In this document: in pieces, positions 2,561 through 27,051 of the stretch
Numbering within the stretch: position 1 is the stretch's first letter
Layout of the letters: every line of letters starts with the position of its first letter
Assembly: GCA_964187785.1 (NCBI GenBank)
Contig: OZ076413.1
Location: forward strand, 73,036,001-73,100,000
Direction: 5' to 3'
Length of the DNA stretch: 64,000 bases
Source of the DNA: Amphiscolops sp. MND2022
Lineage: Eukaryota
Made by a program: the position numbers and the translations under genes
The notes under the pieces: generated by a model
What the model saw: only the letters and a program-made list of their open reading frames with translations
Databases searched by the model: none
Told to the model about the DNA's origin: nothing

Positions 2561-3212
2561 TTGAAGTCATCAAAAATTTCCTTTTTTGACTTATATATAT
2601 CCGAACGTTTTGGGATAATTTCCTGATTGCGATCAAGTTTTCGATTTTTTGTGAAGGTACATCAACATCGACATCGTGATCAATTTGACCAAGCTGGTGC
2701 ATAATAATTGTTGTTGTGACTAGTCTTTTCTATTTGCATGTTCTTTTCTATTCCAAATCTGACGGGACTGTGTTTTTAATGAACAACACCACTGTTCCAG
2801 TCTATTCTGGAACAGTAGTGCTGTTTGAGACGCATAAAAACTTCCTAAAACCTATTAACCCATTATCCCGCTTCGATTCAATTTGCAACAAAGAGCGCTT
2901 ACTAACATGTAGCGCCTCATTGCAGTCAGTTTGAAAACTTCGTCAGGTTGTAGACTTGAAAGTTTCTGTCACTTTTCTAGCAAAAATTGGTCTTTGAACA
3001 AACAATGCCTTTCGTCTGTTTTTTTTGGAAAAACTTTCATCACATTTGGTTGAAGAACTTTCTTCTTCATCCTTTTTAACTACCTTCTTTTAAAAGAGTC
3101 TTGCAGCCTGGAGCAACTTCTGCGAAATGCGGAAAAAACTGTTTTTATCAGTAGACAAGAAAATACTTTTGATATCTCGAAAATTCCTCTGGAAACCTTT
3201 GAATGAACTCAC

Positions 3213-3862
3213 CTAACTCCCGTAGTTTTGGAGTAAAAGTTGTTGTAGTGCACTTCCAAGAGGCCCAGAGTTATTGAGATTGACGTGATTGTAACCAAAG
3301 CAGCCGCTAGCACTTTATGATGACTCGACGTGAGTGAGAGAGAAGGTCGGCACACTAACAGGTATCTCACGAAAGCCGTGGCTGTCAAACAAATCCCAGT
3401 GCTGTATTCATTTAGAAAAGTTCGCAGCTCCAAAAGCACACAACCCAGTAACCCACCAACCCAGTGAAGGTTTTCAAAATCCACAAAATGAACATACGGA
3501 GGACCCATGAGATCATCTCTGGCGAAGTGTTTCTGTTTTGCATAGTATTTGTCCATAAGTTTCCACTCATAGATCCCATTCGCAACTCCAGGGCCACATA
3601 TGTCAATCAAACCTTGCATAATTACTGGAAAAAATGTCCAAGATCGAAAATCATTATGTCTTAGAAGAAACGCAAGAAGCAGCATGTTGAATGCAACAGA
3701 TTGGATACTGAAATAGGTGCACAGACCGAGTTTCAGTTTCATTATGTTTAGGAAAAACTCATCTACGCGAAGTCCGTCTTCATTTTTTATCATGTAGAAC
3801 CATTCATCCTGATAACCAAGGCTGGCAACTGGGGTTGCCGTCGAGCTGTTATTGATGCCCAT
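3213..3862 (-). CDS. First coding exon of a divergent rhodopsin-like (class A) GPCR, TM1-TM4
   Basis: Open 217-codon frame from ATG with an N-terminal NNS sequon and four hydrophobic helices. TM3 ends TAFVRYLLVC (DRY-like), with an extracellular Cys before TM3. A canonical AG|GTGAGT donor lies at 3213/3212. TM5-7 exons were not located. Confidence 0.72.
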
Positions 3863-4159
3863 GATTGCACAAGCGTGAAGGAGCTGGCAAAGAATGAACT
3901 GACCGAGTTGATCGTAACAGAATGCAGTTTAATGCACTCTCAAGACTGATGTTTTCACTTTGTAGGTTTTTGTGGAGGAGCGTTAAATGTTTAACTTTGA
4001 AGGCTTGTGGGTGCTCACAGTTTGTTGGTTCAAACCGTTCAAAGAAGTTTTCAAATGCGGGATTTTTGTCCGTACTGGGTCAACTTGCAATCCTGAAAAA
4101 AACTATAGAACCTGAGAGTCCATTACAGTGCCAAAAGTGGTTATTTTGAATTTTTCTTT

Positions 4160-4350
4160 GCAGTGAATTTCGCTGCAATGCATTGGATTCCACTATCAAA
4201 TACCTTAAACATTCGGATCTTGCAGTGGATTCCACTTAACACGAAACGTGGATTCCACTAAACGCAGCAGTGGACTCCGCCGATGGCCGCAGTGGAATCC
4301 ACCATTGGCTGTAGTGGACCCCACTGCAGTGTTTTAGTGGAATTCACTGA
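4160..4350. repeat. Left subterminal cluster of GTGGAWTCCAC palindromes
   Basis: Exact copies at 4225, 4248 and 4292, plus several variants (gtggactccgc, gtggaccccac, gtggaattcac). Confidence 0.85.
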
Positions 4351-4709
4351 ATTCTTTCAATACCAACCTACAAAAGCTATCAACCATCGAAAAGAACTGG
4401 AGTTAGTGTACTTCAGTGCCTAAAAGTGTTTCCTTCACGTGTTCAGTTTTGAGAATGAGGAACATTTTCAGAATCAGCAAGTGTCACAAAAAGCAGAATT
4501 CATGTTTTCTTCATTTGGTTCAAAATTATTACTACAGAGTTTTTGTCAATCAATTTATTTTGATACTCGCACCGCTTTGCCTCTTTAGTTTGACTTACTT
4601 TTTTCATTCTTTGATTGAATCAAACTTCCCAGCTGACTGCAACGGGTATCTTATCAATTCTACCAATCTACAAGTTCAAATTCAGTCATCTAATAAATTT
4701 TAGAGTAGC

Positions 4710-5170
4710 GTCAAATCACTGTTAGTCAATTTGTTGCATGCTGAATATGATGCTACTTCAGAATTTATTACATCAAAAGAGTGGATATCAAAATTTCACC
4801 CACAGCTTATCCGTATATTTTAGGTATAACAAGTTTTCGTTTTCCAATCACCTCATGGTGGATACCAAAATTTCAAAGTAAATTACAAGCCGAATGATGA
4901 ATGAAAATCAACTTATTGTTCTCAAATTCAAATTAAAATTTCGTCCTCTAATAGACTTTAAAGTAAAGTCATATCACTGTTAGTCAAAATGCATGATGCT
5001 ACTTCAGAATTTATTACATCAAACTAGTAGATATCAAAATTTCACAGACAGCTCTTGCGTGTACTTTAGGTATAACTAGTTTTCATTTTCCAATTATCTC
5101 AAGGTGGATACCAAAATTTCAAATTAAATTACAAGCCGGAAGATGAATGGAAATCAAATTATTGTTCTCT
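4710..5170. repeat. Diverged ~250-bp direct duplication inside the giant element
   Basis: tcactgttagtcaa...gatgctacttcagaatttattacatcaaa...ggtggataccaaaatttcaaa occurs at ~4716 and ~4974. Confidence 0.85.
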
Positions 5171-5269
5171 ATCAATATCTCTACCCCTCATCTAGATTTA
5201 TGCGAAGAAGACGTTGCAAGGATTCACTGAAATTGTTATTCACGGTGTTTTGTTCCGGTGTTACGAAAA

Positions 5270-6365
5270 CAAAAACATTTGTATCTGTAGCAATCAGTGT
5301 TTAAATACAAAATCGCAATTGAAATTAAAACGAAAGTAGTGAACAATTGAATACAAAACAACGAAAAGATAATCGTTTTGAAAACGCAGCCGAGTGTTCT
5401 GACGATTCTATCAGTCAAATATCGGCTGGGAATCTTCACGTTCCTGGAAAAGTTGATTGGCAATAGGGTCATTGCATTCAAAACGGAGCTGCTCAAATGG
5501 TAGAACATCCCGTGTATCTCGGAACACTACAATCTTATTGCCATTTTGAAACAACTATATCAATGTAGGCTTCGTGTTGGCGCCGTTTGATTTCAACTGC
5601 GAGTGGTTGGCAAGGCGTTCAGGGCAGCAAATATTTGGGTGAAGGGGGCAAATCTCTTTCGAGGCATCAATGATTCTTCTAGAAGCGCCACTTTTAACCT
5701 CCAGAACGAACTCCTGTTCCACACCTTCTTTCTCGAGGACTTGGCTCAATGACACGTTCAAATACACCTCGCCATGATTTTTCATTAAAATGTCGTCCTT
5801 TGAAACTTTCTGTGTGGCAATCACACATCTACCAAGTTTTGTCATTTTGGCGAAACCTAAACAGATTCCAGGCTACAGCTGTGTCTCACATTGTTGCGAC
5901 AACATAATTTGTGCTTCATACGGCAAATTATGGGCCAGTCCAGCATACCGAATTCCACTGCTCTCAGGTACCTGCGAGGATTTTCTAATTGACTGGTTGT
6001 TAGAGAGAATCAATAACTGCGCTGTCACTTTTTTCACGTCCTGGTTCTTATCCTCTAGCGAAGTCCAATTTTGTCGCTGGAAAAATGCCGTCACTCTTGA
6101 CTCAAGGCAGTTAGTAGCAACTTTCCCAGAAATGTGTTCAAAGTATAGCAATGTCCTGGCTTACTGGCGGGTGTACCTCTGCTGGTCTTGGCGGGCGCGA
6201 ACAGCGTTTCTCACCCCATTTTTGTCGAAACCTTTGACATTTGATAGAACCAAAGTCGTTGCATGTTTCAGCTTGGCGATTTTGAAGCAGGGGTCATTGG
6301 GAAGTGGCATCAGTTCCGCGACTTTACTTTTCAATGTATTTTGATCTTTCTTTTCTTTTTTTTTG
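5270..6365 (-). pseudogene. Disrupted cargo ORF of unknown function, downstream of and probably part of the 327-aa gene
   Basis: The KKKEKKDQNTLK... segment and ORFs 5873-6151 and 5555-5845 share one frame, separated by single stop codons. A plausible 53-nt GT-AG intron at 6366-6418 would link it to the upstream exon, but it is out of phase by 1 nt at an A9 run. Confidence 0.5.
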
Positions 6366-6392
6366 CTTGAAATGAAAAGATCGAAAACATAT

Positions 6393-7395
6393 TTAACGCA
6401 TATTTAAGTCCGTTTTACCAATTGAATTCACAAAAACTAACTCTGTATTAATTGGACGTTTGTCGTCTTTTTCGTATCGAACAATGGCTAATTTGGTGTC
6501 GTTGGGATCAAAAAATGGCCGAATTTGTGTAAAATATACTTTCAATGCTTCAACAAAATTTCCGGGTACTTTGTGAACTGTTCGTTCCGTTGATCCAATT
6601 GTGTGTTCCACACAGAGATTGAAGGCGTCGCTCAGTAAGTTTTCTTCGTGATCCATCACGATTTGCACAACTGAATGTACCGAGACATTCCTGATGGAAC
6701 TTTCAAGCATAGGTGGTACCGCAAAATAGAACAGGGTTGTAATTATGCATCGAAAGAGTTCCAACTTTGCTTTTTGTACTACTCCCACGTCTTCTTTCGA
6801 TGCCTTCACATGTTTAGTCAACGTGCTTTCGTACACGTTGTTGTCAAAGTAAGTAACTTTCGCGCATTTGGATGGGCTATCACCTAAATTATCCTCACTG
6901 CACTGGGAGTCATATGGACGCTTCTCGGGTAGCTCATTGAGCAGGGATGACACATTGTTCGGGGGCGCATTGCTTTGGGGTGGCCCGTTCTGGTGAGGCA
7001 GTAAATTCCGTGACGGAGGGGCCTGTTGCAAGAAGTTCTGAGGCGGCAAAGGAATCTGAGTCAGATTGTGAGCATTCCGCAGTAAATTTTCTAGAGGTTC
7101 GGTGGGCGTGTGTTCAATCAAGTGCTCGATCCCATCAGAGTTCATCATTCTAGTTGCACTGAACAAACCCTCCTCGTGGGCCGATGGAATTGGCGAGCAA
7201 GCTGGCTGACAATACAGGAGTGCATTATTGAGTAAATCTGGTGGCACGTTCCAGTCGGTAGATCGTTGATGCGAGTATTGCACAGGCGTAGATGTCTGAG
7301 ATGGACACAAGAGTGTCGATTCGAGATTTGAAATTTTGTCAGGCATGCTGGAATTATTCATAACTTTGGAGCACAAATCTTGACAGTGGATTTCG
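6393..7395 (-). CDS. Orphan cargo exon (~330 codons; Pro/Gln-rich middle, predicted helical C-terminus), copy A
   Basis: Stop-free for 327+ codons. It is preceded by a strong acceptor (CTAAC branch point, tttcttttcctt, CAG at 7398-7396). No domain recognised. Confidence 0.65.
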
Positions 7396-8167
7396 CTGAA
7401 GGAAAAGAAAGTTTTGTTAGTTTTTTTGAAAAAGCATCATTTTTCTAATTAGCAGAAGAGTCGATTTTACCTAATAAACTAATAACTTCAACCAGTAAAT
7501 GTTATCAGGTTTAATACGGTGATTGAGTCTTTCCAGGACTCAAATACCTCTTTGAATATATTAATACTCACTAGATAATTTAATTGCTAGTGATAATTCT
7601 TTTATTAAGCTCTCGAAAGGGAATGACACCTCCTTTTAGGTCCATCACCGTGAATTTAGCCTCATATTTTGCGCAAGTTTTGTGTTGGCACCTGGTAGTC
7701 ACTTTGCACAAATTTGAATAGTTTCTCCTCAGAGGAAATTCACGTGTTTCTTCCCGTTGAAGTCAACTTTAAACTCCACTACAATGCTTTTGCATAGTTT
7801 TAAATTATACGAAATTGTTCCAATCCTCGACCCCGAAACTTATATTTGTCGCTGGAAAAATGCCGTCACTCTTGACTCAAGGCAGTTAGTAGCAACTTTC
7901 CCAGAAATGTGTTCAAAGTATAGCAATGTCCTGGCTTACTGGCGGGTGTACCTCTGCTGGTCTTGGCGGGCGCGAACAGCGTTTCTCACCCCATTTTTGT
8001 CGAAACCTTTGACATTTGAAAGAACCAAAGTCGTTGCATGTTTCAGCTTGGCGATTTTGAAGCAGGGGTCATTGGGAAGTGGCATCAGTTCCGCGACTTT
8101 ACTTTTCAATGTATTTTGATCTTTCTTTTCTTTTTTTTTGCTTGAAATGAAAAGATCCAAAACATAT

Positions 8168-9170
8168 TTAACGCATATTTAAGTCCGTTTTACCAATTGA
8201 ATTCACAAAAACTAACTCTGTATTAATTGGACGTTTGTCGTCTTTTTCGTATCGAACAATGGCTAATTTGGTGTCGTTGGGATCAAAAAATGGCCGAATT
8301 TGTGTAAAATATACTTTCAATGCTTCAACAAAATTTCCGGGTACTTTGTGAACTGTTTGTTCCGTTGATCCAATTGTGTGTTCCACACAGAGATTGAAGG
8401 CGTCGCTCAGTAAGTTTTCTTCGTGATCCATCACGATTTGCACAACTGAATGTACCGAGACATTCCTGATGGAACTTTCAAGCATAGGTGGTACCGCAAA
8501 ATAGAACAGGGTTGTAATTATGCATCGAAAGAGTTCCAACTTTGCTTTTTGTACTACTCCCACGTCTTCTTTCGATGCCTTCACATGTTTAGTCAACGTG
8601 CTTTCGTACACGTTGTTGTCAAAGTAAGTAACTTTCGCGCATTTGGATGGGCTATCACCTAAATTATCCTCACTGCACTGGGAGTCATATGGACGCTTCT
8701 CGGGTAGCTCATTGAGCAGGGATGACACATTGTTCGGGGGCGCATTGCTTTGGGGTGGCCCGTTCTGGTGAGGCAGTAAATTCCGTGACGGAGGGGCCTG
8801 TTGCAAGAAGTTCTGAGGCGGCAAAGGAATCTGAGTCAGATTGTGAGCATTCCGCAGTAAATTTTCTAGAGGTTCGGTGGGCGTGTGTTCAATCAAGTGC
8901 TCGATCCCATCAGAGTTCATCATTCTAGTTGCACTGAACAAACCCTCCTCGTGGGCCGATGGAATTGGCGAGCAAGCTGGCTGACAATACAGGAGTGCAT
9001 TATTGAGTAAATCTGGTGGCACGTTCCAGTCGGTAGATCGTTGATGCGAGTATTGCACAGGCGTAGATGTCTGAGATGGACACAAGAGTGTCGATTCGAG
9101 ATTTGAAATTTTGTCAGGCATGCTGGAATTATTCATAACTTTGGAGCACAAATCTTGACAGTGGATTTCG
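8168..9170 (-). CDS. Orphan cargo exon, copy B
   Basis: Identical to copy A except TERTV/TEQTV; offset 1775 bp. Confidence 0.65.
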
Positions 9171-9558
9171 CTGAAGGAAAAGAAAGTTTTGTTAGTTTTT
9201 TTGAAAAAGCATCATTTTTCTAATTAGCAGAAGAGTCGATTTTACCTAATAAACTAATAACTTCAACCAGTAAATGTTATCAGGTTTAATACGGTGATTG
9301 AGTCTTTCCAGGACTCAAATACCTCTTTGAATATATTAATACTCACTAGATAATTTAATTGCTAGTGATAATTCTTTTATTAAGCGCTCGAAAGGGAATG
9401 ACACCTCCTTTTAGGTCCATCACCGTGAATTTAGCCTCATATTTTGCGCAAGTTTTGTGTTGGCACCTGGTAGTCACTTTGCACAAATTTGAATAGTTTC
9501 TCCTCAGAGGAAATTCACGTGTTTCTTCCCGTTGAAGTCAACTTTAAACTCCACTACA

Positions 9559-10769
9559 ATGCTTTTGCATAGTTTTAAATTATACGAAATTGTTCCAATC
9601 CTCGACCCCGAAACTTATATTTGGAAGTCTGCGAAGATAATAGCGTTCACAACTGATTGGTGTCTGAAAATCCCATGGATCGACTGGAGCACTCGTCTGC
9701 AGGCAATAGAAAATCCGCTAGAATTGCGTCCTGGCCGAAATAGGTGGAGCATTAGAAAAGCCCGACATTCGCAACCAGTCATGTCGAAGAAGCGTTCTAA
9801 ACCCCTGTCGTATAACCCAAACCGACTGCAAAATAACGAGCCCGTGCAATTTTGGCTACCCGAATGTGATTTTGTGGGGCATTGTTTTATTGATTCCCAT
9901 GAAAAAATTAAAACGGGATTTATTTCGACGAATGACCCAATTACCCATGAGTGTGTCGTGGAGATGGACGAAATGTTTAGATTTATCCCCTATTGTTACT
10001 TGAAGAACTCAGTGGAAAACACCCATGTCACGATGAGAAAGCAGAAGACGGCGATGAAGCTGAAGATGCGAGGCAGGAACATCGGGAAGAACCAAAACAG
10101 AAATGAACTTGAACACAAACACCGGAAATAGACTTTTCAACATTGATCCCGAAAAGCCCTGTTGATGTCAAATTAAGCTATGTACCATGTGTCAATGGGA
10201 TTTGTCAAAGAGGATCCATCATTACTTTGTCTGGAATGGAATTCAAAGCCGAAGATTTGTACTACAGTGCGCAGAAGTTGAAATCATTTGCAATAATAGT
10301 ATTCGTGGACGATGAAGACTGCGAACTTAGGATGCCGGTCAACAACGGTTCGTTGAAGATCTCGGACTATTTGAAAAACATGGAATAAAGTTTTTTCACT
10401 CTTGATAATGATGTTGATAGAACGTTTGCAGTCTTTTCGACAATCAAGAGATGTGTTGGTTTGTCGTTCAACAAATCATCAAATGTGACAAATATGATCC
10501 CTGCAACTGAGCTCACAAAACGTGTCTGTGGGTTCAAGTCGGACTCAAGCAAAGAAACCGTGAAAATTTCAAAAGAAGTTGAAACAGGAAACTTGGGAAG
10601 CTATAACAGCTTAGATTGTATATTGGGCAAGAACTGTGACATCATTCCAGATATGCTTGAAGATGAGCCTGCCACATTGATCAAGATTTTGAAATTCACG
10701 GCGCAACTTTTTGATGTTCTCAATCAGATGCCACATAACGACAACCGAAAGTTACTACAAAAAACTTGA
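9559..10769 (+). pseudogene. Disrupted ~400-codon cargo ORF, divergent from the 327-aa gene, function unknown
   Basis: ATG at 9559 is open to 10131, followed by a frameshift. 10143-10388 and 10461-10769 share one frame, separated by a single stop. Confidence 0.5.
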
Positions 10770-11179
10770 AGATCATCGACGAAGCTTTAGACAAAACAAC
10801 CAACATGCGCACATTGAATACTTTGTTGCCAATGACCAATAGGGGTAGCATTTTTGGTATCCACCGTGAGTAAGTGTGCGATTAGGTCTCCAAAAAACGT
10901 CTGTTTTGTTACCTTAAATAAACTGAATGGTATTTCTATTGGTATCGTTCAAATAAAGTTCTTTTTTCTTAAATCGATTGTTACAGTAATTTTGTCCTTG
11001 TTACAGTAATTGATGTCGAAAAAGTTTTTTTACTTGTGACTACATTCTTGAGAAAATCGCCAGTAGTTAATTTCAAATAATGCGTTTCCCACTTGCGTAA
11101 TAATGATTTATTACTTAGATTGTGACACTTTCCAAACTTTCGGTACAAACGTTTTTTTAAATATGAAACCAGAAACGGT

Positions 11180-11465
11180 AGGTGGATTTGACTAACATAT
11201 GCAAATACATTGGCAGTGGATTCCACAAACAAATCCTTAAACATTTGCAAACCATTTCAAAAGGGGTACATTCAGTGAATTATTAGTTCTAAATTGACTT
11301 AATTTTCTTTTGCAGTGGATTCCACTATTCTGGAAAATAGTCTTCATCCTGCGAAAAGTGGTTTGTGGAATCGACTAACGTATACCAATACATTGGGAGT
11401 GGATTCCACAAACAAATCTTTACACACTTGCAAACCAGTTCAAAAGGGGGTATATTCGGGGTATG
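11180..11465 (+). repeat. Internal inverted-repeat arm L (~1.5 copies of a ~184-bp monomer)
   Basis: aatacattgg(c/g)agtggattccacaaacaaat occurs at ~11205 and ~11388. The segment is the reverse complement of 15720-16045. Confidence 0.85.
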
Positions 11466-11864
11466 TTTCAGGCTACTGGAAATCAGCCATATTATCAAGA
11501 TAGTCAAGATCACGAATAAGCTTTCAATTCTAAGCTAAAGAGTTTGATCAATATAAAAACTAATAAATTATAAAAGTTTCTTCAAGTAGTTCATCATAGT
11601 GAGGTCTTCTCAAGGCTTTTTTTACAGTGGAGGCTTGTTGCGAAGGCCAGCTTGTAGAGAGCAATTTTCTTGCTCAAAAACTCTTTGAGAGTGTCGCAAC
11701 TTGCAAAGGGAGGCAGCAGTGTGTCTAAACAGATCATAATGATGCGGTTTGCAATTTTTTTCAACAGATTTAATCTTTTTCCGATAGTGTAGTGGTCAAA
11801 TACCTATGTAGAGTTTAAGATCAAGATTTCAAAAATTATGACATCACCAATTGTGGCTCCTATC

Positions 11865-14257
11865 CTATATCCTATCCTTCTCCTTTTGAAGGATGCTGCG
11901 GTCACATGTGCTGGTCTTCTGCATTGTTTCGGGGATTTCGGTCTGGTGCAATGGTCCAATTCGCACTTCCTTGATTGTCCCTGTGAAGGCGTACACTGGC
12001 CCTTTTGGGTCGCGATAGGGCTGCTCTGGATCCCTCAATCCCAGTTGATGCAAATTGAAAGCTGGATACACCTGGTAACAAAAGGCATTGACAATGATGA
12101 ATAGAGCGAATTCAAGAAGAAACGTGCAAAATTACATTTTTATTTGAAGAAACTACAATAAAATTGTTAAACGTTTCGAAACCACAACCAATAAATTCCT
12201 TACTTCAAAACCCAGTGTGTGGAAGAGATGTTTTCTTTTTTCAACATTATCAGTTCCCATTCAATATTAACAAACATTCATTACCATTTTGATGGCGTCG
12301 AGCTCACTGCCGATCTGCTCTTTGAGAAGCGTAAGTTGTTGGCTTGAGAAGAGGGGGCTCCATGATCCTCTCAGGGAATTGAGTTTCCGCTGGATTTGTC
12401 GTATTTTCAACTGTAACACAGCATAAATAAGAACAACTACAGAAAAAACTTCTTCATCATCAATTTCCTGCTGACTGGCAATGAGATGGCTGTCCACAAT
12501 CAGAGGGAGTTGGAGGCAAAAGCAATGGAGTCCCCTTTGTCGCAACTACGTGTGGCCAGCGTGCAGGCAAAACGAGGATGTCGCCTGCTTCCACCACAAG
12601 TTTGTGGACCCCACCTTTCAGCGCTTTCAGGTTCCCGAAAGAAGTTGGTCTAAATAGAGACAAATTTTTATACATATGAACGAAACAACTGGTTCAATGA
12701 TTTTGAATCAAGTGTTTGATTGATAAATTGCTCTTTTCAAAATAATGACTTTGCGTTGAGTATGTTTTAAGTACATGATTTGAGTACTTCTACCTGCAAA
12801 ACGGCACTTGTCGGTTCCACCAGCCAGAAGATATTCTGCACTCGGGCGACAGTATAAAAGGTAGTCCTGCTAGAAAAGTCGACATGCCACGGCGTGACAC
12901 ACTGGTCGTTTGAGACCAGCAAATAATTGGATGTAGCCTCAGTGAAGTGCCCTGCTACATCCACACTCATCTGCTAGGTGGTCATCCGCAGAGTATCGGA
13001 CAAAGTCTGGTACTTGGAAAAACTAAACCAAAACGATAAGACTTCAGCAAACGGTTTCGAAACAAAGGCTCCTTTGAACCTTTCCAAGGTGTGGTAAAAA
13101 ACCTTACATTCCGCTCAAGTGCAATATCAATGATATTGACAGGAAATGTCCCCGTAGGCGCTATAGAGGGCCCCGCTCGCTGCTCGTCCAGGTATTCCCT
13201 CACTGCTAAAGACCTGACCTGAAATTCAAACTGTATATTCCGATCATACTCCTTTGAAACTACTTTACCAATGTTTATATATCTCAAAGTGAAATCCACT
13301 GCCAACGATGTCTTAGTCACTGTCCAGTGGATACGAAATCTCAAAATACTTTGGTTCAACGGAGAGAATAATTTTTGTCACTAATGGTAAAACGCTATAA
13401 TTAAAAAAAGTTTGTGAAATTCGAAAAGTACAAAGAATGGCGGTATATGTTCACCTGTTGGTCAGGTGGTAGTCGTGATGTCTTTGCAGCAAGCTTCGCT
13501 GCAGGATTAGCCACGTGCTGCAGCAAGAACTCGACTTGGTGGAGAAAGTCCTCAGCGGGCAGAACTGGGAGCTTCAAACATCGCGAGTTCATTGCCCCGT
13601 TCTTCCACAGTTTTGGCTGGCCACGAGAAAGTGCTTTCATGACCATGCCGTTTTCATCTTTTTGCCCATTCTCCCACCTGCAGCAGTTCCATGACTCCTC
13701 TGAAAGCAGCATGTCATCTAGGTGCTTTACGAAGAGACTCTTCCCTTCGTACGCCCGTCGACTTGGCTCGCTCGTCATTGCCATGTCGCTTCCTTTGTGT
13801 CAGGTGTCTCTGTAGGGAGTCAGTCCGGGCAAATTCTTCACCACAGGATGTGCAAGGATTTTTCTTGCTGGGGTTGGCTGTTCCTAGGAAATTTTATGTT
13901 TAAACTTCAAACTACTCGTCGAACAGTTCTGCCAAAAACAGTATTTTCCCATCGTGAAAGCTAAACCAAGTAACACAATTGTTTTCGTTTTCTCACAGGC
14001 AAATTGTTGACATAAATGGTCTGCTTACAATAATTTCTATTATTTTGGGGTATGTCTGTCGTGCAGTACCTCGCATTCTCGATGTGCCGCTTGAGGGTTA
14101 CAGGGGTGGCAAAGACCCTCTTGCAACGGGGACAAGCTTTGTTTGGCGGCTGCTTCGAACTGCAAGTTTTTTGGTGCCTCTCAAGTTTCGTGCGGCGGTT
14201 CGACTTGTACGAACAATTGGGGCAGTTGAATTCAGTCTGTTGAAACAAGAACAACAC
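11865..14257 (-). pseudogene. Spliced zinc finger + JmjC (KDM2/KDM7/PHF8-like) histone demethylase gene, frameshifted
   Basis: Two C2H2/C2HC-type fingers (CPNC...HQKTC; CPRC...HIENARYC) at 14060-14230. JmjC motifs: NYLLVSNDQCVTPWHVDFSSRTTFYTV..IFWLVEPT (12810-12930), VVEAGDILVLPARWPHVVAT, and GDSIAFASNSL after a frameshift in a G run. GT donors at ~13456, 12793 and ~12284. A phase-0 junction reads AIKM|VYPAF. Confidence 0.8.
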
Positions 14258-14632
14258 TATAGTTTAACCTCGAAGTCTCGTGCATTTACCTATTTTTTTA
14301 GTTGTCATGTAAACTTATATATGAGTATCAAAGAGAATTGATCTTTGAGATCAGAACCATAAAGTATTGGATTGCTCCCTCTTAAAATGATATAAAAAGA
14401 TCGAATTCGGGTCTTTTCTGTTATCCCCCACCCTACTCATTAAAATTTTACCCCCAATATTTCGTATGTCAGGATAAAAAGAGCAGTACATGACTCACTT
14501 CCTAATGATTCACTTCTTAATGAACATTTCAATTTTTATATGGTAAGAATCGTAGTAAAAGACTAATTTCCTTTGACTCATTTCTTAACGAATTGAGGGG
14601 GAAGAGTAAACATGCTGGGGGCTCTTTATTTC

Positions 14633-14960
14633 TACTCACGGTGGAAACGAAAAATTGCCTCTACAAATGGTGAACAATTTTTCACTCAGGCCTGTTCAAA
14701 GAAGATGGCAGTTCAAACTCAGATTTGTTTTTCTACTCGGGGGAAACGAAACTTTCCCTATGGAAGTTCAAGAGGACTTTTTACTGACAGTGTGTACCAA
14801 ATTTTTACTATACAGACTCAGGTTTTTTCCACTACTTACGGTGGATACAAAAAATTTCTATTCAAATGCAGAACAAAACTTTACTCACGGTGTAAACCAA
14901 AAAACTTTTATTACAACTGAAACTGACTCCTTTTCTGCTCACGGTGGATACACAAAGTTT
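14633..14960. repeat. Degenerate ~50-bp tandem array (~7 units) with core TACTCACGGTGGATAC
   Basis: Core variants at 14633, ~14683, 14733, 14782, 14833, 14882 and 14936, upstream of the ZnF-JmjC gene. Confidence 0.75.
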
Positions 14961-15719
14961 TTCAACTGAAACGAACATTTTCATTTCGTATCCCCAATTT
15001 TAGAGGTAAAACTATAAAAAAAGGAACTAACCATTATGAAATGAGGAAGCAGGCAACGTATAAGGAAATCGACTTTAAAGACTTGTATGACAAAGGTCAG
15101 GCAAAGACCTAAAGAAGGCTTTTTGAATTAAGTTGGTCAAAACTAGCAAGCGGTTGAATTGAAAGATCGAATGACAAAGAATCAATTCCCTGAACTAGAA
15201 AAACATTTCCTACATCCACTTCGGCAGTCAATCAAAATCGAATTATCATTTCCGGTTCCGTAAACTTTTGTAACAGTTCTGTTTTATGACGCTACAACTG
15301 CAAACACGTTTATCAAATTGACACTTTCTTCAGATTCATTCCAATTGTGCTGAGTGAATGCATACATTTGAACAAATGAATGGTAAACAAAATGAAACAT
15401 ATTTAAGCAAAATGAAAAACGGAACGAGAGCAGACTTTTTCTAGAACACAAAATGATTCACTTTTTAACCTACCAAAAAAATTTTGAATGCACTTTAGAT
15501 AATTGAACGTTGCATATGTCTTACGAAAACCTATTTTATTTGACAACTTCTCTGAAGTCACAAATATTTAGGACAAACGTTATCAAAAATTTCTGTTATT
15601 GGAACCCTATGTTGAATTTGATCATTAAATTTGTTCATGATTTCTTCCGTCGTGACTCTGAGTGCGGTAATTTTAATTTTAATTATTGTAGCCTGATGTC
15701 ATTCTTTTTGTTGTACATA

Positions 15720-16045
15720 CCCTCTTTGAATAGGTTTGCAAATGTTCAAGCATTTGTTTGTGGAATTCACTGTCAATGTATTGGTATACGTTAGTCGATT
15801 CCACATATCACTTTTCGCAGGGTGAAGAATACTTTCCAGAATAGTGGAATCCACCGCAAAAAAAATTTAAATCTATTTAGAACTGTAACTCACTGAATAT
15901 ACCCCTTTGGATTATTTTGCTAATGTTTAAGCATTTGATTGTGGAATCCACTGTCAATGTATTTGTATATGTTATTCAATTCCACTAACTGCTTTTTGCA
16001 GGATAAGGAACGTTTTCCAAAAGAGTGGAATTCACTGCAATAAAG
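15720..16045 (-). repeat. Internal inverted-repeat arm R (~1.8 copies of the ~184-bp monomer)
   Basis: Reverse complement matches arm L, e.g. gtggaatcgactaacgtataccaatacattg and gtggattccactattctggaaa. Confidence 0.85.
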
Positions 16046-16387
16046 TTCAAAACTATTCAGGATTTACAATTATTACAAAACTGGTGTTTTTTTACTCCTG
16101 TAACTATCCCACTTGCTGGAACACTACGTGGTTTCAGCGCGCTCCGGACTTCATTTTTCAAACTTCTTTATATACCACCCCAAAGGTGAAAATGACCGCC
16201 AAAGTTTAGACAGTTGCTATAAAAGTCGAAGAATTGCTACTTTTTTGAGAATTACTTTTTTGGTAATCAATAAATGAGTTTCTTCTAAATAACCAGAAAA
16301 AAAATGTTCAAAAGCTTATTTATTACCACAAGCAAAGATAAAAGAATATGTCTTCAAAATCAAGTAATGAACAAGCAGTTGCAAAAA

Positions 16388-19300
16388 TTAGAGTAAAAGA
16401 CGATCATCAGCTGGAGTTTTGTTAGGTTTCACTAGGCCGTTTCGGTATCTTTTCAATGCCAAAATGGCAGACGAATTCTCTATTGATTTGTTATCATCTA
16501 TTTGAACCATTAAGAGTGGTCGCATGTCATTAATTTTCATCCGGTTGATCAAGAGTCCAGGCCCTATCATATCTTTATTAGGGTCTAGAATGAAGGTAGA
16601 TTTCATATTTCGAGTACGTATTCAACAGTGATGAACATGAAACCCCCGACGCAAATAATTTGCAGCCCAAAGCTGCTGGAGACAACTTCTTTTGTTTAAA
16701 ACTTTTCATTTTCTCTGCTTTCAGCGTCTGTTGACAACTCACTCGCGGAACAATGTCTATGAAGCTTCAGTTTTGTTCTCATGGCTTCCAATTGATATTT
16801 ATCACCGGTCGCATTATTAAGGTTCTCTTCATCTTTGACAATAACGTGAAAATTCAAGATATTTGAATGGGATTTCATTAGGTTCTTTGCGTTTTCTTTC
16901 TCATAAACGACACCTCCCATTTCGGAAATTCTATCTTTGAGGAAATCCTGTGTGAGCCCACGCTTGAACCTACCTACAATTGTAAATCTCGATCCTCTTA
17001 GAAGGTCGCAAAATTCTCTCGTTTCGCCAACGGCAAGGCAGGGTACCGCCAGGAGACCTCTACAAATGTCTAGATAAGTTTTGGCACCCTCGAGAGTCTC
17101 TTCAGTCGTGAGTGTTTTTCTCACATGTTCAATGAGATTGGATATATTTTTCGGAAATTGTTTAAGAAATATCCAGGAACCAGCAAAATGAAAACGCAGT
17201 ATCCAGAAATAATGGATCTTGATGGTAAATGGAGCCACCGCCTCTCATGGTTCAGGTTCGACTTTTTCTGTTGGCATTGTGGTTTGATTTTTCCAAGCCT
17301 TCGCAGAGGTGATTCCTTGACCTCTCAATGTACCCGCTTTCAACTAGTTGTGCCATCAATGGAAGCTTGAGTTTGTATGGTGTCGACCCCTTTTGGCCGA
17401 AGAGAAACAAATTGATTCGAAAGTATGTTCCAGCCCATCGTTTGTAAGTGTCGACATCAATGTTTTCTGACTTCTCAACAGAATAACACACTGGTTTAAA
17501 CGTTGTCGTAGAAGCTCACAAGCGTCAAAAGTTGACATATATCTTTCTTCGTTTCTTAGATTTATGGGGTCTCGTTTGTCAAATAAATGTGGATGTAAAG
17601 ACTCCAGTACTTTTGCAGCCTCCAAGTTGTATCCATTCTCACTTCCAAGAAGTATCTCTGTCGTCCAAAAACCGTCATAAAGGTTCTTGATTGTTTCAAG
17701 TTGAGCATTTCTAAGTTCTTCTGTTTCAGCTATAACTGTGAGTGCATTCGACCCCGCTAATGACTGTGGTCCTAATGTTCCTGGGGTTTTACCTACGTTC
17801 TTGTGGGTAATATTGAACTGAAAAGACAGTCTTTTAGCTTCTCGGCTGGTCAGATTTTTTTTCAAAGCGCTGAACGCTTAAAGCTTCCCAGGGATGTTTG
17901 TCGTTAATTACCTTCTGAGCCACTCTTCTAATATCATTCTCACTGCAACGCGTTATCATGTGTGACAATACATCTCTAGGAACATGTTGTCTGAATGGGA
18001 TCTACAAAAATGTTCATCGTCCATCGACATCTGAGCAGCAGGTGGGGAGGAAATTTTTATCGCATACATATATCGGAAGTTGTGAGGGATGAGAACTTGA
18101 ACGTTCAGTTGAAATTCCAATGACCCAACGCTTCAAGAACGGGCTGTCACCGCTGTATGTTATTTCAAAGCCCAACGATTGTAATTCTTTTGTCTGGCGG
18201 TATAGCCATCTAGATTCTTGCTTACCCAGGATAGACGGTCTAAAATTTTGTTCCATTGCATATCGACCATCTTTGCCACGATAGGATGCAAAACAGAGGA
18301 CAGCTTTTGATGATTAGCTGCCAACTGTGGTGTTCAAAATGCTGAATGCTAGACGCGTTACCTCAACCCCCCCCCCATTTCACAACCGTCACCCCAAATA
18401 TAATTTTTAAGGCCTTCAAGATTGGTTTTTTGCAGGAAAATTAATGACGCAAACGTCACTGCTTTCAGTAAATTGACTAGAAATCCAGAAGAGGATCGTT
18501 CAGGCTCGCATCTTGTAACAAACAATTTCATTATGAGGCTAGTGGCTCTTTTGATGTGACGAATTAACGTTACTAGGCTACTGCCTCCTAAGCCAACCGA
18601 AACTACCCGTTGCCGAATTGCATTGAGGATATCTTCCATGTTGCCAGTTTTCATTTTGATTGAAAGTTCGTACCTAAAGCACTCGGAGGAGCTTCTGTCC
18701 TCCAAAAGACCCGTGAACAAGTCTCGAATGTGATTACTGCTTGCGCTCCTTTTCCGCCACGCGCTACGTTTCTGATGCTGTTCTTTGAGAATTGTAGCTA
18801 ATCCTTGATTAGGTATACCATGCATTCTAGCAAAATTCAGGACTTTTGTCCAAAAAATTTTACTATTAGTTCTGTGTCACTTTTTGAGTTGCAACTGCGT
18901 AATATTCATATCTGCTTTTTGCTGGTCTTGTTGAATATCAACTTCTGGTGTCTTCTGTAGCACTGCATCTTCTTGGAATGTTACTTCAAGCGGTGTTTTT
19001 TCAAAAGTCCCATGTTGAGAAGAAAATTTATCATTCGTAAAAATACCGACGTCGGGAAAAAAATTGGTGGTAAATTATTTTGCAACGAATTCTCTTCTCT
19101 TTTCGTACCAAGGTAAGTTTTTATAGCCCCGCAGAATTAAAAGTTTCATTTTTTTCGATGTAACAAAAACATATCCCTGGGAATGCCCTTTGATTGGTAA
19201 TTTCTGAATAAGATCGTCTGTCTTCAGAGTGGTCCCTACGACCATTTCAGCAACGATTGAAGTAAGTTTCCGTTGACAATTTTTTAACGTGTGTCCTGAC

Positions 19301-19650
19301 ATAAAGTCTACAATTTTGGAATCGATAAATTCTTTCCCATCATCTAGTGATAGACTGAACATTTCAAATTCTGACATTTCTAAACTTGTAGACAATGAAA
19401 TTGAGCGTATCAATGGTGTATCATTCCGTTGACAATGATTACGCCGAAAAACTATCAATATACGTTCAATTGTTATTGAGTTTCCCGCTCGTTGCGTCTT
19501 CTGATACTTCTGAATTTGGGCCTCAACTTCAACCTCAATTAAACTAATCTTGCAACATTTTTCTCATGGTATTACTGCTCCGCACGCTGTTTAATTAATT
19601 CTTCAACACCTGTTTTAAAACATTTGATTGCACGTTGAACTAAAAATACA
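16388..19650 (-). pseudogene. Disrupted ~1000+ codon RAG1/Transib/Chapaev-like DDE transposase with C-terminal BRCT-like domain
   Basis: A chain of minus-strand ORF pieces contains HVPRDVLSHMITRCSE (D-x-L-H-like, ~17930-17990) and STPYKLKL...NHLCEGLEKSNH (17290-17385). The latter resembles RAG1 TNYFHKTLAH...SEGNES with its catalytic Glu. LRGSRFTIVGRFKRGLTQDFLKDRISEMGGVV resembles a BRCT N-terminus. Confidence 0.62.
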
Positions 19651-20869
19651 TTGTTATGCGTGCGTTCACTAGTAGGTGATAAAGTTAGGTGTGATTTACC
19701 CCAAAAATCATGTGGAATGATTTTTCAGTGATTTTTTCAGTTAGATTTTTTGTGTCCACCGTGAGTCGGTCGACATTATATGAATGATTTGAGTGTGATT
19801 TTACCCCAAAAATCATGTGGAATACTGCCAGCAAATTCTTCTGTTGTTTTTCGACCGTGAGTTGACCGTGAACTGGAACAAAGTTCAAGCACTACTAAGT
19901 TGCTTTACCTGCTGCTGTGTGTACTCAAGTTGACAAAAAAAATAAATGACGAAGAAATTTTTTTAATTATTGAAACTACACATTATCATGAGCAAAAGAA
20001 AGACGTGAACAAAACTTACAACTAAGTTTTTATAGGGTGTAGAAGAGAGGAACGCATCAGGTGTAAGTTGCAATCATTGATAAAGAGTGATTGTAAATTT
20101 CCCACAAGTCGCCAATTGCGTCACAGAAGTTGTATTCGGCATCCTCAAACAAACAAATTTAAAAAGTGGAACTTTTTCCTTTTTCTCACACTTATCAAGA
20201 TGTTGTTTTTGCGATTACAGTAGACTTCGGATAATCGATTACCGGCGTATCCAAAATTTCAGGTAAACGAATTAAAATCCCCGGCAGAGTAGAACATACT
20301 AACATGTTTTCGTTCAATGAATATTTTGCTGAAACAAATATTTTTCGCCGGTCCTGCCAGTATTCTATTAGCCGAAGTCGACGGTAAGTAACAACAAAAA
20401 GACTTGAAAACACACCAGAATCCTTCAATTTTAAATGTATTTCCAGGGGAACAAATTACAATTGAGATACAAACTTTGTTCACACTCTTTTCCCTACTCT
20501 TTGAAAGGTGTGGGGGACTAAGCAAGAAGAGCCAAAAGTCTTTCAATAACGTGGTTATTCACGTGTTAGTTTGAGAGATACATTAATCTGAACCAACATG
20601 AAAATTTTGAAAGAAGAATTTCCACATTTCATTAATGTTTCAATCTTGTTTCTCAATGAAAAATTGGAAAAAAGAAATTTTGAAAATTCCTTCATGTTTC
20701 ATTGATGTGTTCTTTGAACGTGTTCTTTTATGTGTTCATTTGTGAGATACATTCAAATTAATCAGCTTTCACATAATCAACACAATTTCACAGGATTTGA
20801 GCGTTCAAAACTAGTTTATCATGGATTAAGTGTTACATGATTTGAGTGGATTACGAACTTTTCTTACCC

Positions 20870-21240
20870 GCGCGTGGATTTGAGTGGATTACCGCATTGT
20901 GGTCAATTACCTTACAGTCAATTCCACTCGTTTTGCAGTCAATTCCACAAGTTGAAAAGTGGAATCGACTGCGAGCCAAATTGTAATTGGCTGCGAGCCA
21001 AAGTGGACACGACTGTAAGCCGAAGTGGAATCCACTGTACAATTCAGGGATTTTCGCTGAAAGTTGAAATAAGCTGACGCGATTCGTTCAATTCAGTTGG
21101 CAGTGAAAAGCAGTGTATTTCGGTGATCGCATTTCTGTAATTTAGCAAGATATGTTACTGGAATCCAGAACAGGCTGCAGCAGAATCCACTGAAAATCAG
21201 TGAAATACATGTTTAATAATACGTCAGTGGATTTCAGTGA
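20870..21240. repeat. Right subterminal cluster of GTGGAWTCCAC-type repeats
   Basis: Exact GTGGAATCCAC at 21025, plus gtggaatcgac, aattccac, gaatccac and gtggatttc variants. Confidence 0.8.
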
Positions 21241-21399
21241 CTTAATAGCACAAAAGTGTGCTAACCCACTTTTGGCACTGTAATGTCAATGGTACATCTC
21301 TATGACCATTGCTGCATACCATTTCGAAAGTTGCAAATTTACTTGAAACTCTCGGAACTCAATTTTTGGTGACACAATTATGATGGACGAAAAGCACAG

Positions 21400-22642
21400 G
21401 TACAATATATTAAAAACAAAGATAACAATCTAAGGAAATATGTATTGAAAACGTGCATAGCTTTTGTACATGCTCCGATAGGTTCTGAAGTTTGTATTCA
21501 TCGTTACAAAAAAAATTTGTAAAGATTGATGTTCTCAAGTGCATTCTCAACTGCCCATATTTTGCATATTTTTCAAAGAAATACCCCAGTGAAATGAACA
21601 AACGATAGCAAAGTTTAGTTTTTGCAAACGAAATCTGCAAAATTAGTCAAAGAATGTCGAAAAGGGAAAGCCGACTGTAATAGTAAAGTCCTGGTTGTAT
21701 TACCAGTTATGTTAGTTATGTTCTTCGAGGGTGTCCGGGGTGAGGTGCATTGGGTTGAGTTCCCTCTTCATTTGGGCCCAAACATTTTCTATGCGGTTGA
21801 AATCTGGGCTGTATGGGGGCCAGAACTCTTTCGCAATACCATTGTCATGAAGCCACTGCTTAATTTCCCTCGATCGATGGATGGGACAGTTGTCATCCAT
21901 GAAAAACTGGTCCTCGCCCAACGTGTCGATTCCGGCCGTCTTCAGCAGATCAATATAGTCTGCACTCTTGCATCTTTTTGGAGTCTCCAACAATACTCAA
22001 GACCCATGGCCACCTATGCAGTCCCAAAACATTATTGAAAGTCGCGACGTTGTCTTCTCGATTGTGTTCTCTGGCTTGTACCGAGTGGTCCTCCAGACAT
22101 AAACTCGTCCATCACTCTTCAATTAAAACTTGCATTCGTCGCTAAAAACAATGCGTTTCCACTCCTTAACGGTCCTTTTACGTCTCTGTTTTACCCAGAG
22201 CTGTCGTTAACACGGGTTTCTGCTCTCATTCGATGCTTCTTCGCAGCGGCACGGCCTTCAAGGTCCATTCTGTGCAAATTTCGTCGAATTGTTTTTGTAG
22301 ATACAGTTTTGATGCTGAAACTGTTGAATAGAACACAAAGGTTTTTTGCCGATGCCTTGTTGTTCTCCTCCTTTTTGCGTCGTCTACACTGCCATTTTCC
22401 AGGTAATTTTTATAGATTGTTTGAGCCATTGATTTGTTTAAAAAACGCATCTTCTCTTAAATTTGTTCCCACGAAAAGCCCAAATCTCGAAGAATAACGA
22501 CCTTAAGGCGTTCTTGAGACGTTGTTTTACCAATTTTAAACGTAATATTGTTTTAACAGTGAACGGAAAGAAGTTTGTTTTCACGCTTCCTAAAAAATTT
22601 ATACATTTAACTAGCACGCTGTAAGTTTTTGTTTATGCACTG
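21400..22642 (-). mobile_element. Decayed Tc1 (DD34E) transposon
   Basis: WKRIVFSDECKF (~22130) and FMDDNCPIHRS...WPPYSPDFNRIENVW with 34 residues between D and E (ORF 21712-21993). A TA|CAGTGC end lies at 22644-22637. The other end is not clearly seen. Confidence 0.85.
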
Positions 22643-26264: not shown

Positions 26265-27051
26265 TTAAGTTTGATTACATAAGTAAGCATCAAAAAAAGT
26301 CTTGAACGTCCTGTTTTTGTTAGATCTAATGCAATCATAATTCATCAAACTCCATACATATGGATTCCACAGATCTTTGCAGCGAGCAATTATCTTTCCT
26401 GCACGCTTTTCAAACAAAAAACAGTCATCGACCGCGCTCAAATTTTGTTCTAAAGTGAGGCGCGTGGTTGATTGGTTTTCAGTTATCACGAGTATATGTT
26501 TGTCATCATCAAATTTGAACTTTTTCCCTGCTGTATTTTTCAACATATCTGCAATGTAAAAAATAAAAAGCAGAGGGGACAGTACATTGCCCTGCGGTAC
26601 GCCGTGCTCTGGTTGAAAAAAAAGGCTGGTCAAATCATTGAGATTTGTTTTCACAACGCGGTAAATGAGAAACTTAATGAGTAGTTGGAAGTCCTTTGAT
26701 TTTGCTGTCCAAAGTTTGAGCAACCAAATATTGTGCCAAACACTATCAAATGCTTTTTCAAGATCAAGGTTGATCAGAGCAGATTTCTTTTTGTCTCTAG
26801 TGAGTAATTCGTATTCACTTTTGAGTAGGTACTGTGAACGCGTAGTGCTCTTTTTATGCAGGAAACCTTCTTGTGCATGGTCAATTAAGTTGTTTTGATC
26901 AGAAAGTTTTTTTTCTGTTGTTAAGTGTCCTCTCAACACTTTACCAAAGTGGCTGATCATGCAGAGGGGTCGGTGTTGTCTGGTTTGGAAGGTTTCCTAA
27001 TGAAAGGAACACGAGGTTCAGTCCACTGCTATCGACTATTTGTTAGGCAGG
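26265..27051 (-). mobile_element. Non-LTR retrotransposon (LINE) reverse transcriptase fragment
   Basis: QEGF, DLEKAFDSVWH, GVPQGNVLSPLLF and KFDDD motifs. Upstream FIRKPSRPDNTDPSA. The 5' part is duplicated at 28037-28382. Confidence 0.92.

Follow-up and report, generated by a model that had tools for sequence, protein, structure and literature searches.

A decayed 17-kb element in Amphiscolops, very probably one copy of a giant DNA transposon family with predicted chromatin genes

We analysed a stretch of DNA from Amphiscolops sp. MND2022 (64,000 nucleotides without any N; NCBI GenBank assembly GCA_964187785.1, contig OZ076413.1, positions 73,036,001 to 73,100,000, forward strand), which is called the window in the following. 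Positions 4121 to 21285 of the window form one unit of 17,165 bp end to end, delimited by terminal inverted repeats (TIRs) with a 2-bp target-site duplication (TSD) outside them, and containing the remnants of four genes, namely a SET-domain gene, a gene designated here as gene B, a gene for a protein with C2H2 zinc fingers and a JmjC domain, and a transposase gene (Table 1). A first-pass annotation, made from the letters of the sequence, had described this interval as a single giant DNA transposon on the basis of an exact 20-bp inverted repeat 17,165 bp apart, TC on both outer flanks, palindromic repeats inside both ends and a transposase remnant; each of these features is present, the transposase remnant being located at about 16.6 to 19.4 kb on the minus strand. 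Searching the window for the 20-mer CATTACAGTGCCAAAAGTGG with up to three mismatches returned the two ends only, compared with 0.01 matches in shuffled sequences. The two subterminal regions are dissimilar beyond about 24 terminal bases and a short motif.

Table 1. Position and strand of the features that make up the element in the window.
Feature	Position	Strand	Remarks
Left TSD copy, TC	4119..4120	.	2-bp rule in 7/8 copies, with differing sequences
Left TIR, CATTACAGTGCCAAAAGTGG	4121..4140	+	similarity to every other copy begins exactly here
Left subterminal region	4141..4360	.	palindrome GTGGAWTCCAC five times (6-9 in other copies)
SET-domain gene, degenerate	5414..7436	-	stops and a frame change; SET at the low-coordinate end; delimited by tblastn with the 565-aa P0003
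Tandem duplication, 1775 bp	6070..9619	.	units ~6070-7844 and ~7845-9619; private to the window copy
Gene B, degenerate	9532..10755	+	frame change near 10029, three stops
Left internal array	11179..11457	+	~1.5 units of a 183-bp repeat with GTGGAWTCCAC; inverted relative to the right array
C2H2 zinc-finger and JmjC gene (KDM2/PHF8/KDM7-type)	12270..14263	-	several exons or frames; HVD iron-binding motif kept, frame broken
Right internal array	15717..16057	-	~1.9 units of the 183-bp repeat
Transposase remnant	16608..19377	-	RAG1/Transib-like DDE core 17147-19377, BRCT region 16608-17315; many stops and frame changes
Right subterminal region	20911..21265	.	~88% conserved among copies; palindrome twice (3-6 in other copies)
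Right TIR	21266..21285	-	exact inverted copy of CATTACAGTGCCAAAAGTGG
Right TSD copy, TC	21286..21287	.

All four genes of the window copy are broken by stops and frame changes, and this copy is a dead fossil, which would be mobile only with a transposase supplied in trans. The 1775-bp tandem duplication, not found in the seven other copies described below, covers the N-terminal two thirds of the SET gene together with the start of gene B, and yields two near-identical open reading frames (ORFs) of 327 aa (6393-7376 and 8168-9151). A repeat of about 250 bp, present in two copies at 4671-5169, lies between the left subterminal region and the SET gene.

The search for paralogues was seeded with the 347-aa ORF at 6396-7436 (minus strand), whose matches lay in the European Nucleotide Archive (ENA) assembly ERZ25074608, and further loci of this assembly were reached through the ORF of the JmjC region. 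Seven more complete copies were recovered, on different contigs; each was colinear with the window copy over the whole length between its termini, and all carried the same internal genes, so that the earlier expectation of one unit whose genes travel together was borne out. Besides the 17,165 bp of the window copy, the lengths were 17,523, 17,462, 16,949, 16,878, 16,401 and 16,019 bp, plus 11,615 bp for a deletion derivative (copy c5) without the part that corresponds to window positions 11992-15608. The similarity among the copies ended exactly at CATTAC on both sides, with unrelated flanks, and the termini read CATTAC...GTAATG in the eight copies, one end of copy c3 being mutated to TATTAC. 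The flanking dinucleotides, given in the orientation of the window, were paired as TC/TC, AA/AA, TG/AG, TA/TA, TG/TG, AA/AA, AT/AT and CT/CT. A perfect 2-bp TSD was thereby present in seven of the eight copies, for which an arithmetic estimate at 1/16 each gives a chance of about 3e-8, and reading the TSD as 3 bp failed in the copies compared. The 2-bp TSDs (TC, AA, TA, TG, AA, AT and CT) are made without obvious sequence preference; paired ends at similar spacing with different 2-bp duplications had been proposed beforehand as the pattern that would confirm a mobile unit.

The window copy was an outlier, about 86% identical to the others, which were 91-98% identical to each other. When proteins were clustered at 90% identity, one cluster contained 92 variants of the SET protein and another 76 variants of the gene B protein, and every cluster member listed sits on its own contig, which suggests a family size of dozens to about 100 copies. 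We consider it very probable that the family consists of giant cut-and-paste DNA transposons, about 16-17.5 kb long and present in high copy number, which work by the mechanism proposed below, and that the interval 4121-21285 is a single decayed member of it.

The accessory genes were characterized from the better preserved copies. The intact SET protein P0003 (565 aa) matched the Pfam family SET (PF00856) with 34.3 bits, against a cut-off of 22.4 bits, and its best match in the PDB was the SET-domain protein 4ldg (E 5.8e-5); the approximately 400 residues that precede the SET domain gave no match in these searches. In intact copies, gene B encodes a protein of about 410 aa, which had no Pfam match and whose full length is conserved even where the identity falls to 42%. 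Its structure model, built from 10 sequences, was of low confidence (predicted local distance difference test score, pLDDT, 49.1), and the best Foldseek matches of this model were the tandem Agenet/Tudor readers AGDP3, FMRP, 53BP1 and SETDB1 with E 3.5e-3 or weaker, a hint only that gene B is possibly a tandem Tudor/Agenet-like protein. As for the JmjC gene, exons of copy c2 encode C2H2 fingers, the exon with TPWHVDF matches KDM2A, PHF8, PHF2 and KDM7 with E from 5e-11 (KDM2A) to 2.6e-8, and the next exon matches the following segment of the same proteins. These exon matches indicate that the gene encodes a histone lysine demethylase fold of the KDM2/KDM7 type together with zinc fingers.

The first-pass annotation had counted at least three unrelated cargo genes inside the element; the three further genes are there, and it is their description as unrelated cargo that did not hold, as they are a conserved set of the lineage. 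A second family in the same genome, represented by locus L007 (6800-20210; ctg184756, ERZ25074608), encodes all four proteins, with identities to those of the first family of 54% for the transposase, 46% for SET, 42% for gene B and 38-42% for the JmjC exons, and no DNA similarity between the two families was found. The order in the first family is SET(-), B(+), [array] JmjC(-) [array], transposase(-), and in the second SET(-), B(+), transposase(+), [array] JmjC(-) [array]; the inverted arrays at the second JmjC gene are 92.5% identical to each other and carry a related motif, CGTGGAAACC. The termini of the second family were not found within 21 kb of the locus. In another sample (ERZ21818094), a SET-domain gene lies 3.8 kb upstream of a 32%-identical transposase, the two being divergently oriented. 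The ratio of nonsynonymous to synonymous substitution rates (dN/dS, Nei-Gojobori), roughly estimated from tblastn segments, was below 1 in 21 of 22 comparisons between copies, mostly 0.2-0.7 and for all four genes, and was 0.2-0.55 for every gene when the divergent window copy was one of the pair. The recurrence in a second family, the SET neighbour of the 32%-identical relative and the dN/dS values together indicate that the three genes, SET, JmjC and gene B, are residents of the element, ancestral to the lineage and kept under purifying selection, rather than recently captured host DNA.

It is unlikely, in our judgement, that a real giant transposon has here passively captured SET, JmjC and gene B as host genes or fragments without any role for the element. 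Such capture is common in large DNA transposons (PMC6431247) and would fit the broken state of all three genes in the window copy, as it would fit copy c5, which is without most of its JmjC gene and yet has a perfect TSD, and those dN/dS values between young copies that are near 1. It does not fit the presence of all three genes, together with the transposase, in a second family as well (rearranged in order, 38-54% identical as proteins), nor the SET gene beside the distant transposase of the other sample, nor the constraint seen for every gene against the divergent window copy; moreover, the subterminal motif also flanks the JmjC gene in the arrays.

This motif, the palindrome AGTGGAWTCCACT (GTGGAWTCCAC), occurs 14 times in the window with up to one mismatch, compared with 0.09 expected, and 14 of 14 sites are inside the element, in clusters at 4182-4348 (five sites), 11215-11410, 15843-16036 and 20958-21036 (two sites) and as a single site at 13288. 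Every copy has the motif; the leftmost 400 bp contain it 5-9 times and the rightmost 400 bp 2-6 times. The inverted internal arrays (about 280-340 bp, 86% identical) flank the JmjC gene, and the right one is expanded to about six units in other copies, c2 among them.

The arrays also raise the question of a composite origin, in which a self-relocating array-JmjC-array cassette (11.18-16.06 kb) entered a smaller element with SET, gene B and transposase. We regard this as improbable. The bounding of the JmjC module by inverted arrays at 86% identity has the look of such a cassette, the module stands on the other side of the transposase in the second family and is for the most part missing from c5, and in red algae accessory genes reportedly pass from one transposon family to another (bioRxiv 10.1101/2025.02.11.637652). 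On inspection, however, no terminus or duplication was found at the outer edges of the arrays, the c5 deletion (window 11992-15608) does not end at the arrays, the position of the module is identical in all seven full-length copies of the first family, and recombination between the inverted arrays explains the order in the second family equally well.

A segment of 128 bp present in seven of the seven other copies (L001:5654-5783) has no counterpart at window 13074|13075, and includes a sequence like the element's own terminus (CTTTACAGTGCCAAAAGTCA). This TIR-like segment was considered as a miniature inverted-repeat transposable element (MITE) and rejected, as it has neither clean ends nor a TSD.

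An intact transposase ORF of 764 aa is present in copies c2 and c8. It had no Pfam match and no sequence match in the PDB, either by phmmer or with a profile of 54 sequences; 370 homologues (E <=1e-3) were found among 1.84 billion representative proteins, and no homologue record looked up carried an informative name. At the C-terminus of the long homologues (about 850-1300 aa) there is a BRCT domain, which was the one Pfam match to recur: Pfam found BRCT_2 in 17 and BRCT in 6 of 54 homologues, sets that may overlap, so up to 23 of the 54. None of the 54 members matched a Pfam transposase family at E <=1, hAT, MULE and P included. The AlphaFold model of the transposase, built on the alignment of the 54 homologues, reached a pLDDT of 86.9 and a predicted template modelling score (pTM) of 0.72. 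When this model was compared with the PDB by Foldseek, the top 45 matches were all RAG1, HzTransib (the Transib of Helicoverpa) or BbRAGL (the RAG-like protein of amphioxus), with E from 1.7e-6 to 1e-3, probability 1.0 and 558-769 alignment columns, at modest TM-scores of 0.26-0.54 (target-normalised); Hermes (hAT) came next, with TM-scores of 0.25-0.28 and E of 1.3e-3 and weaker. Because the model ranks RAG1, Transib and ProtoRAG ahead of every other fold, the earlier designation of the unit as CMC/Transib-related seems fair.

The secondary structure of the model follows the RNase-H strand order. In the alignment of the 54 sequences (MAFFT), which are partly fragmentary, the near-invariant acidic residues occupy the places expected of a DDE triad: beta-1 bears D326 and D330 (motif D-x-W-G-D-G), D410 comes immediately after beta-4, and the helix that follows an insertion domain of about 200 residues bears E705 and E708 (motif H-x-x-E-x-x-E-x-S-N-H); P-D482-x-x-H485 after beta-5 is invariant, and H702 and H712 are conserved. 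The catalytic residues are probably D326 or D330, D410, and E705 or E708. We infer that the transposase is a DDE enzyme, about 1000 aa long, which folds like RAG1/Transib and has a BRCT domain at its C-terminus.

Where the core meets the BRCT region there is a poly-A run whose length varies among the copies (L003:9486-9493; window ~17210): five of them, the window copy included, have the equivalent of A7, c2 and c8 have A8, and c9 has A9. With A9 the BRCT region is in frame, whereas A8, the length in both copies with the intact ORF, puts it into the -1 frame, the site being A_AAA_AAA. Mutational decay, a fault of the assembly or a programmed slip could each explain this variation.

Could the transposase be a member of some other DDE superfamily whose motif is [C/D]-x-x-H, such as hAT, P, Kolobok or MULE, and its match to RAG1/Transib reflect only a shared RNase-H core with an insertion domain? 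The motif after beta-5, which is D482-x-x-H485 and not C-x-x-C, the want of a conserved H(3-4)H, the Foldseek match to Hermes and the failure to link the protein to RAG1 or Transib at the sequence level all point that way. We nevertheless hold it to be quite improbable, as RAG1, Transib or ProtoRAG make up the first 45 structural matches, at TM-scores roughly double those of Hermes (0.26-0.54 versus 0.25-0.28) and with E down to 1.7e-6 versus 1.3e-3 and weaker, and no Pfam model of hAT, MULE or P was matched. In the Repbase classification hAT elements make TSDs of 8 bp, P elements of 7-8 bp, Kolobok TTAA and MULE elements of 9-10 bp; the 2-bp TSD and CA..TG termini found here fit the CMC/Transib clade and none of these.

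Eight colinear copies with exact termini lead us to reject three further readings, among which segmental duplication is ruled out by colinear copies that end at CATTAC amid unrelated flanks. There is practically no chance that the two ends are separate short elements (MITEs or neighbouring transposons) with 17 kb of host DNA and host genes between them, a view suggested by the limited likeness of the two subterminal regions and by the two internal clusters of the motif, readable as further element ends, and refuted, as are separate MITEs in particular, by the whole interval being found in the same order and with the same termini at seven other loci, on different contigs with unrelated flanks and 2-bp TSDs of their own, the internal arrays being present in all copies without a CATTAC terminus. 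Equally negligible is a Tc1/mariner-type element with a CAGTGCC... terminus, a TA duplication and a palindromic CATTAATG target, CATTA then being flank and TSD: the termini can be read as ...CAT TA|CAGTGCCAAAAGTGG ... CCACTTTTGGCACTG|TA ATG..., and a Tc1-type DDE_3 remnant adjoins the element at 21.7-22.5 kb, but CATTAC (once TATTAC) precedes the GTGCC core in eight of eight copies while the bases outside vary freely, so that CATTA belongs to the element and the TSDs are varied (TC, AA, TA, TG, AT, CT), the encoded transposase is RAG1/Transib-like and not Tc1-like, and the DDE_3 remnant is outside the inverted repeat.

We then compared the family with known transposons. Those of the CMCT clade (EnSpm/CACTA, Mirage, Chapaev, Transib, Plavaka, ESTA as well as Lanisha) have CA..TG termini and TSDs of 2-5 bp (PMC12730594). 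The termini CATTAC...GTAATG with a TSD of 2 bp match this description, as does the RAG1/Transib-related DDE structure (Foldseek, E down to 1.7e-6), whereas the family described here shows no conservation of C(2)C and H(3-4)H, the defining motifs, and membership in the clade is therefore unproven. The designation RAG1/Transib-like is thus supported by the fold, the type of terminus and the TSD length, and is not supported by the sequence motifs of the clade.

The closest known kind is Plavaka, within the CMCT clade, and the family most resembles, by description, PlavakaB and the giant forms of red algae. PlavakaB has the termini CATCA..TGATG and a TSD of 2-3 bp (PMC12730594); CATTA..TAATG matches these at four of five positions at each end, and the 2-bp TSD fits. 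Three giant Plavaka families of 17.4-19.1 kb, with a transposase and three accessory genes, are described in the red alga Bostrychia, where PAG1 is of unknown function, PAG2 combines an N6-adenine methylase with SET, and PAG3 combines a ParB-like domain with a 2-oxoglutarate (2OG) oxygenase, the latter seen only by HHpred, and has inverted-repeat tandem arrays beside it (bioRxiv 10.1101/2025.02.11.637652). Enlarged En/Spm families of 16-20 kb with 4-5 ORFs are reported from Chondrus crispus (PMC6431247), and Plavaka-type elements also from green algae, a moss and Amoebidium, a relative of animals (bioRxiv 10.1101/2025.10.09.681428; 10.1101/2024.01.08.574619). The giant red-algal elements of Bostrychia and Chondrus are similar in size to the family described here and have, like it, a transposase and three accessory genes, and the parallel extends to a SET gene, to a 2OG-oxygenase (here JmjC) gene that has inverted arrays next to it and to a third gene without known function. 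The differences from PAG2 and PAG3 are that no methylase domain was found here, that C2H2 fingers take the place of ParB and that the JmjC domain is plainly KDM2/PHF8-like. Furthermore, Plavaka transposases are reported to keep C(2)C and H(3-4)H (PMC12730594), whereas the transposase here carries D-x-x-H, shows just one conserved H ahead of the E and is fused to BRCT.

The first-pass annotation had taken CATTA for a one-base variant of the CACTA terminus and the element for a family not yet described, related to CMC/Transib. That relation stands, and the part that does not is classical CACTA as the closest kind, Plavaka with CATCA..TGATG and a TSD of 2-3 bp being closer. Chapaev and CACTA have CAC..GTG termini and TSDs of 2-4 bp, and CACTA/EnSpm, Mirage and Chapaev share with the family here CA..TG termini, short TSDs, subterminal repeat clusters and more than one gene (PMC4079192, PMC6004678). 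The short subterminal repeat clusters at both ends of classical CACTA elements and the 2-bp TSD of Mirage are found here as well, whereas CACTA termini with a 3-bp TSD are replaced by CATTA and 2 bp. For most of its length, the transposase model finds its best structural matches in the proteins of Transib, RAG1 and ProtoRAG, which share with it a large insertion domain and a DDE site placed on an RNase-H fold. The TSDs of Transib and RAG measure 5 bp, and these elements are short, with one or two genes (Transib itself being a compact one-gene element) and a C(2)C and H(3-4)H zinc site, in contrast to the 2-bp TSD, the 16-17.5 kb, the four genes and the absence of the motif in the family here.

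Epigenetic enzymes are known from transposons of other superfamilies, namely fungal elements with TET/JBP, HarbingerS and oomycete MuDR elements with SET, and plant VANDAL elements with VANC (PMC12730594; bioRxiv 10.1101/2025.02.11.637652). Those elements, and by analogy the present ones, stably encode a chromatin- or DNA-modification enzyme thought to counter the silencing of their own copies. They usually have a single enzyme, whereas the family here combines a predicted methyltransferase, a predicted demethylase and a possible methyl-lysine reader, and also carries arrays of a shared palindromic site. It is possible, as a tentative alternative to placement with Plavaka or CACTA, that the family is a separate, so far undescribed deep lineage of RAG1/Transib-like transposons, marked by D-x-x-H in place of the C-x-x-C zinc motif of the clade, the BRCT fusion and an ancestral three-gene chromatin set aimed at its own palindromic arrays.

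In the mechanism that we propose, the transposase would pair two 20-bp ends, cut at the CA/TG termini and integrate with a 2-bp stagger, in a cut-and-paste manner, and the BRCT domain may, going by the general roles of such domains, couple transposition to the repair of double-strand breaks by the host. A protein of the element would bind GTGGAWTCCAC, candidates being the JmjC protein, through its C2H2 fingers, or the transposase, through its N-terminal domain. By this binding, demethylase, methyltransferase and reader would be drawn to the copies of the element itself, where the proteins of SET, JmjC and gene B would act on chromatin, most likely so as to counter silencing by the host. The same anti-silencing logic has been proposed for VANC of VANDAL, for fungal TET/JBP and for PAG3 with its arrays in red-algal Plavaka (PMC12730594; bioRxiv 10.1101/2025.02.11.637652).

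Several observations weigh against the window copy belonging to a RAG1/Transib-like family that acts on its own chromatin. One of the eight copies has a mismatched flank pair, and this is c3, the same copy that has the mutated terminus TATTAC. No empty site was seen, since in the analysed sequence no repeat spans the insertion point and neither flank is repeated, and the predicted empty-site 22-mer (GAGAGTCAATGG; ...CCTGAGAGTCAATGGTAC...) had 0 matches in JGI metagenome contigs, where the 20-bp TIR had 0 matches as well. The link to RAG1 and Transib is based on predicted structure, with modest TM-scores; phmmer and profile searches found no sequence-level link to RAG1 or Transib chains, and the C-x-x-C / C(2)C and H-x(3-4)-H motifs are not conserved in the 54-sequence alignment. 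To these points are added the low pLDDT of the gene B model and the roughness of the dN/dS estimates; the chromatin and anti-silencing function and the palindrome binder we infer as candidates only.

If the family is as described, giant DNA transposons that stably carry their own chromatin enzymes are not confined to fungal TET/JBP and red-algal Plavaka elements, and a predicted histone methyltransferase, a predicted histone demethylase and a possible methyl-lysine reader would travel together with a RAG1/Transib-like transposase. The transposase family, with 370 public homologues, has no Pfam model and no name in the records looked up, and would add a BRCT-fused branch to the relatives of RAG1. 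Should the deep-lineage reading be true, the family would represent a self-contained mobile unit that edits its own chromatin. The intact copies c2 and c8, the 20-bp end, the 11-bp palindrome and the two diverged families make the proposal that the transposon escapes silencing by such editing directly testable. The interest thus lies in the family, with near-intact members elsewhere in the same genome, the window copy being dead.

Beside copy c10 (L006:17388-20627) we observed a 173-aa ORF with a faint match to Pox_A32 (packaging ATPase) and a 1175-aa ORF that runs past the edge of the locus, and this neighbour may be virus-like or Polinton-like. In the window, the Tc1/mariner-type transposase remnant lies directly to the right of the element, outside the inverted repeat, at 21600-22500 on the minus strand, and its ORF 21715-21996 matches Pfam DDE_3 with E 5e-16. 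The left flank contains a 239-aa open frame (3212-3928, minus strand) of weak rhodopsin-family character (Pfam 7tm_1 at 25.9 bits, below the cut-off; apelin receptor, E 2e-3), the one feature of the sequence that hints at an animal host, and, at 702-1577, an 87-bp tandem repeat of 9.9 copies with 93% matches. Rfam gave no match in the 147 kb searched. Much of the remaining window consists of retroelement remnants; an RVT_1 reverse-transcriptase ORF is located at 26268-26996 (minus strand, E 1.5e-16) and an integrase zinc-binding ORF at 33164-33613 (plus strand). Strong strand asymmetry over long stretches was also observed, with an AT skew of +0.2 to +0.3 at 30-38 kb and a GC skew of +0.15 to +0.43 at 44-56 kb.

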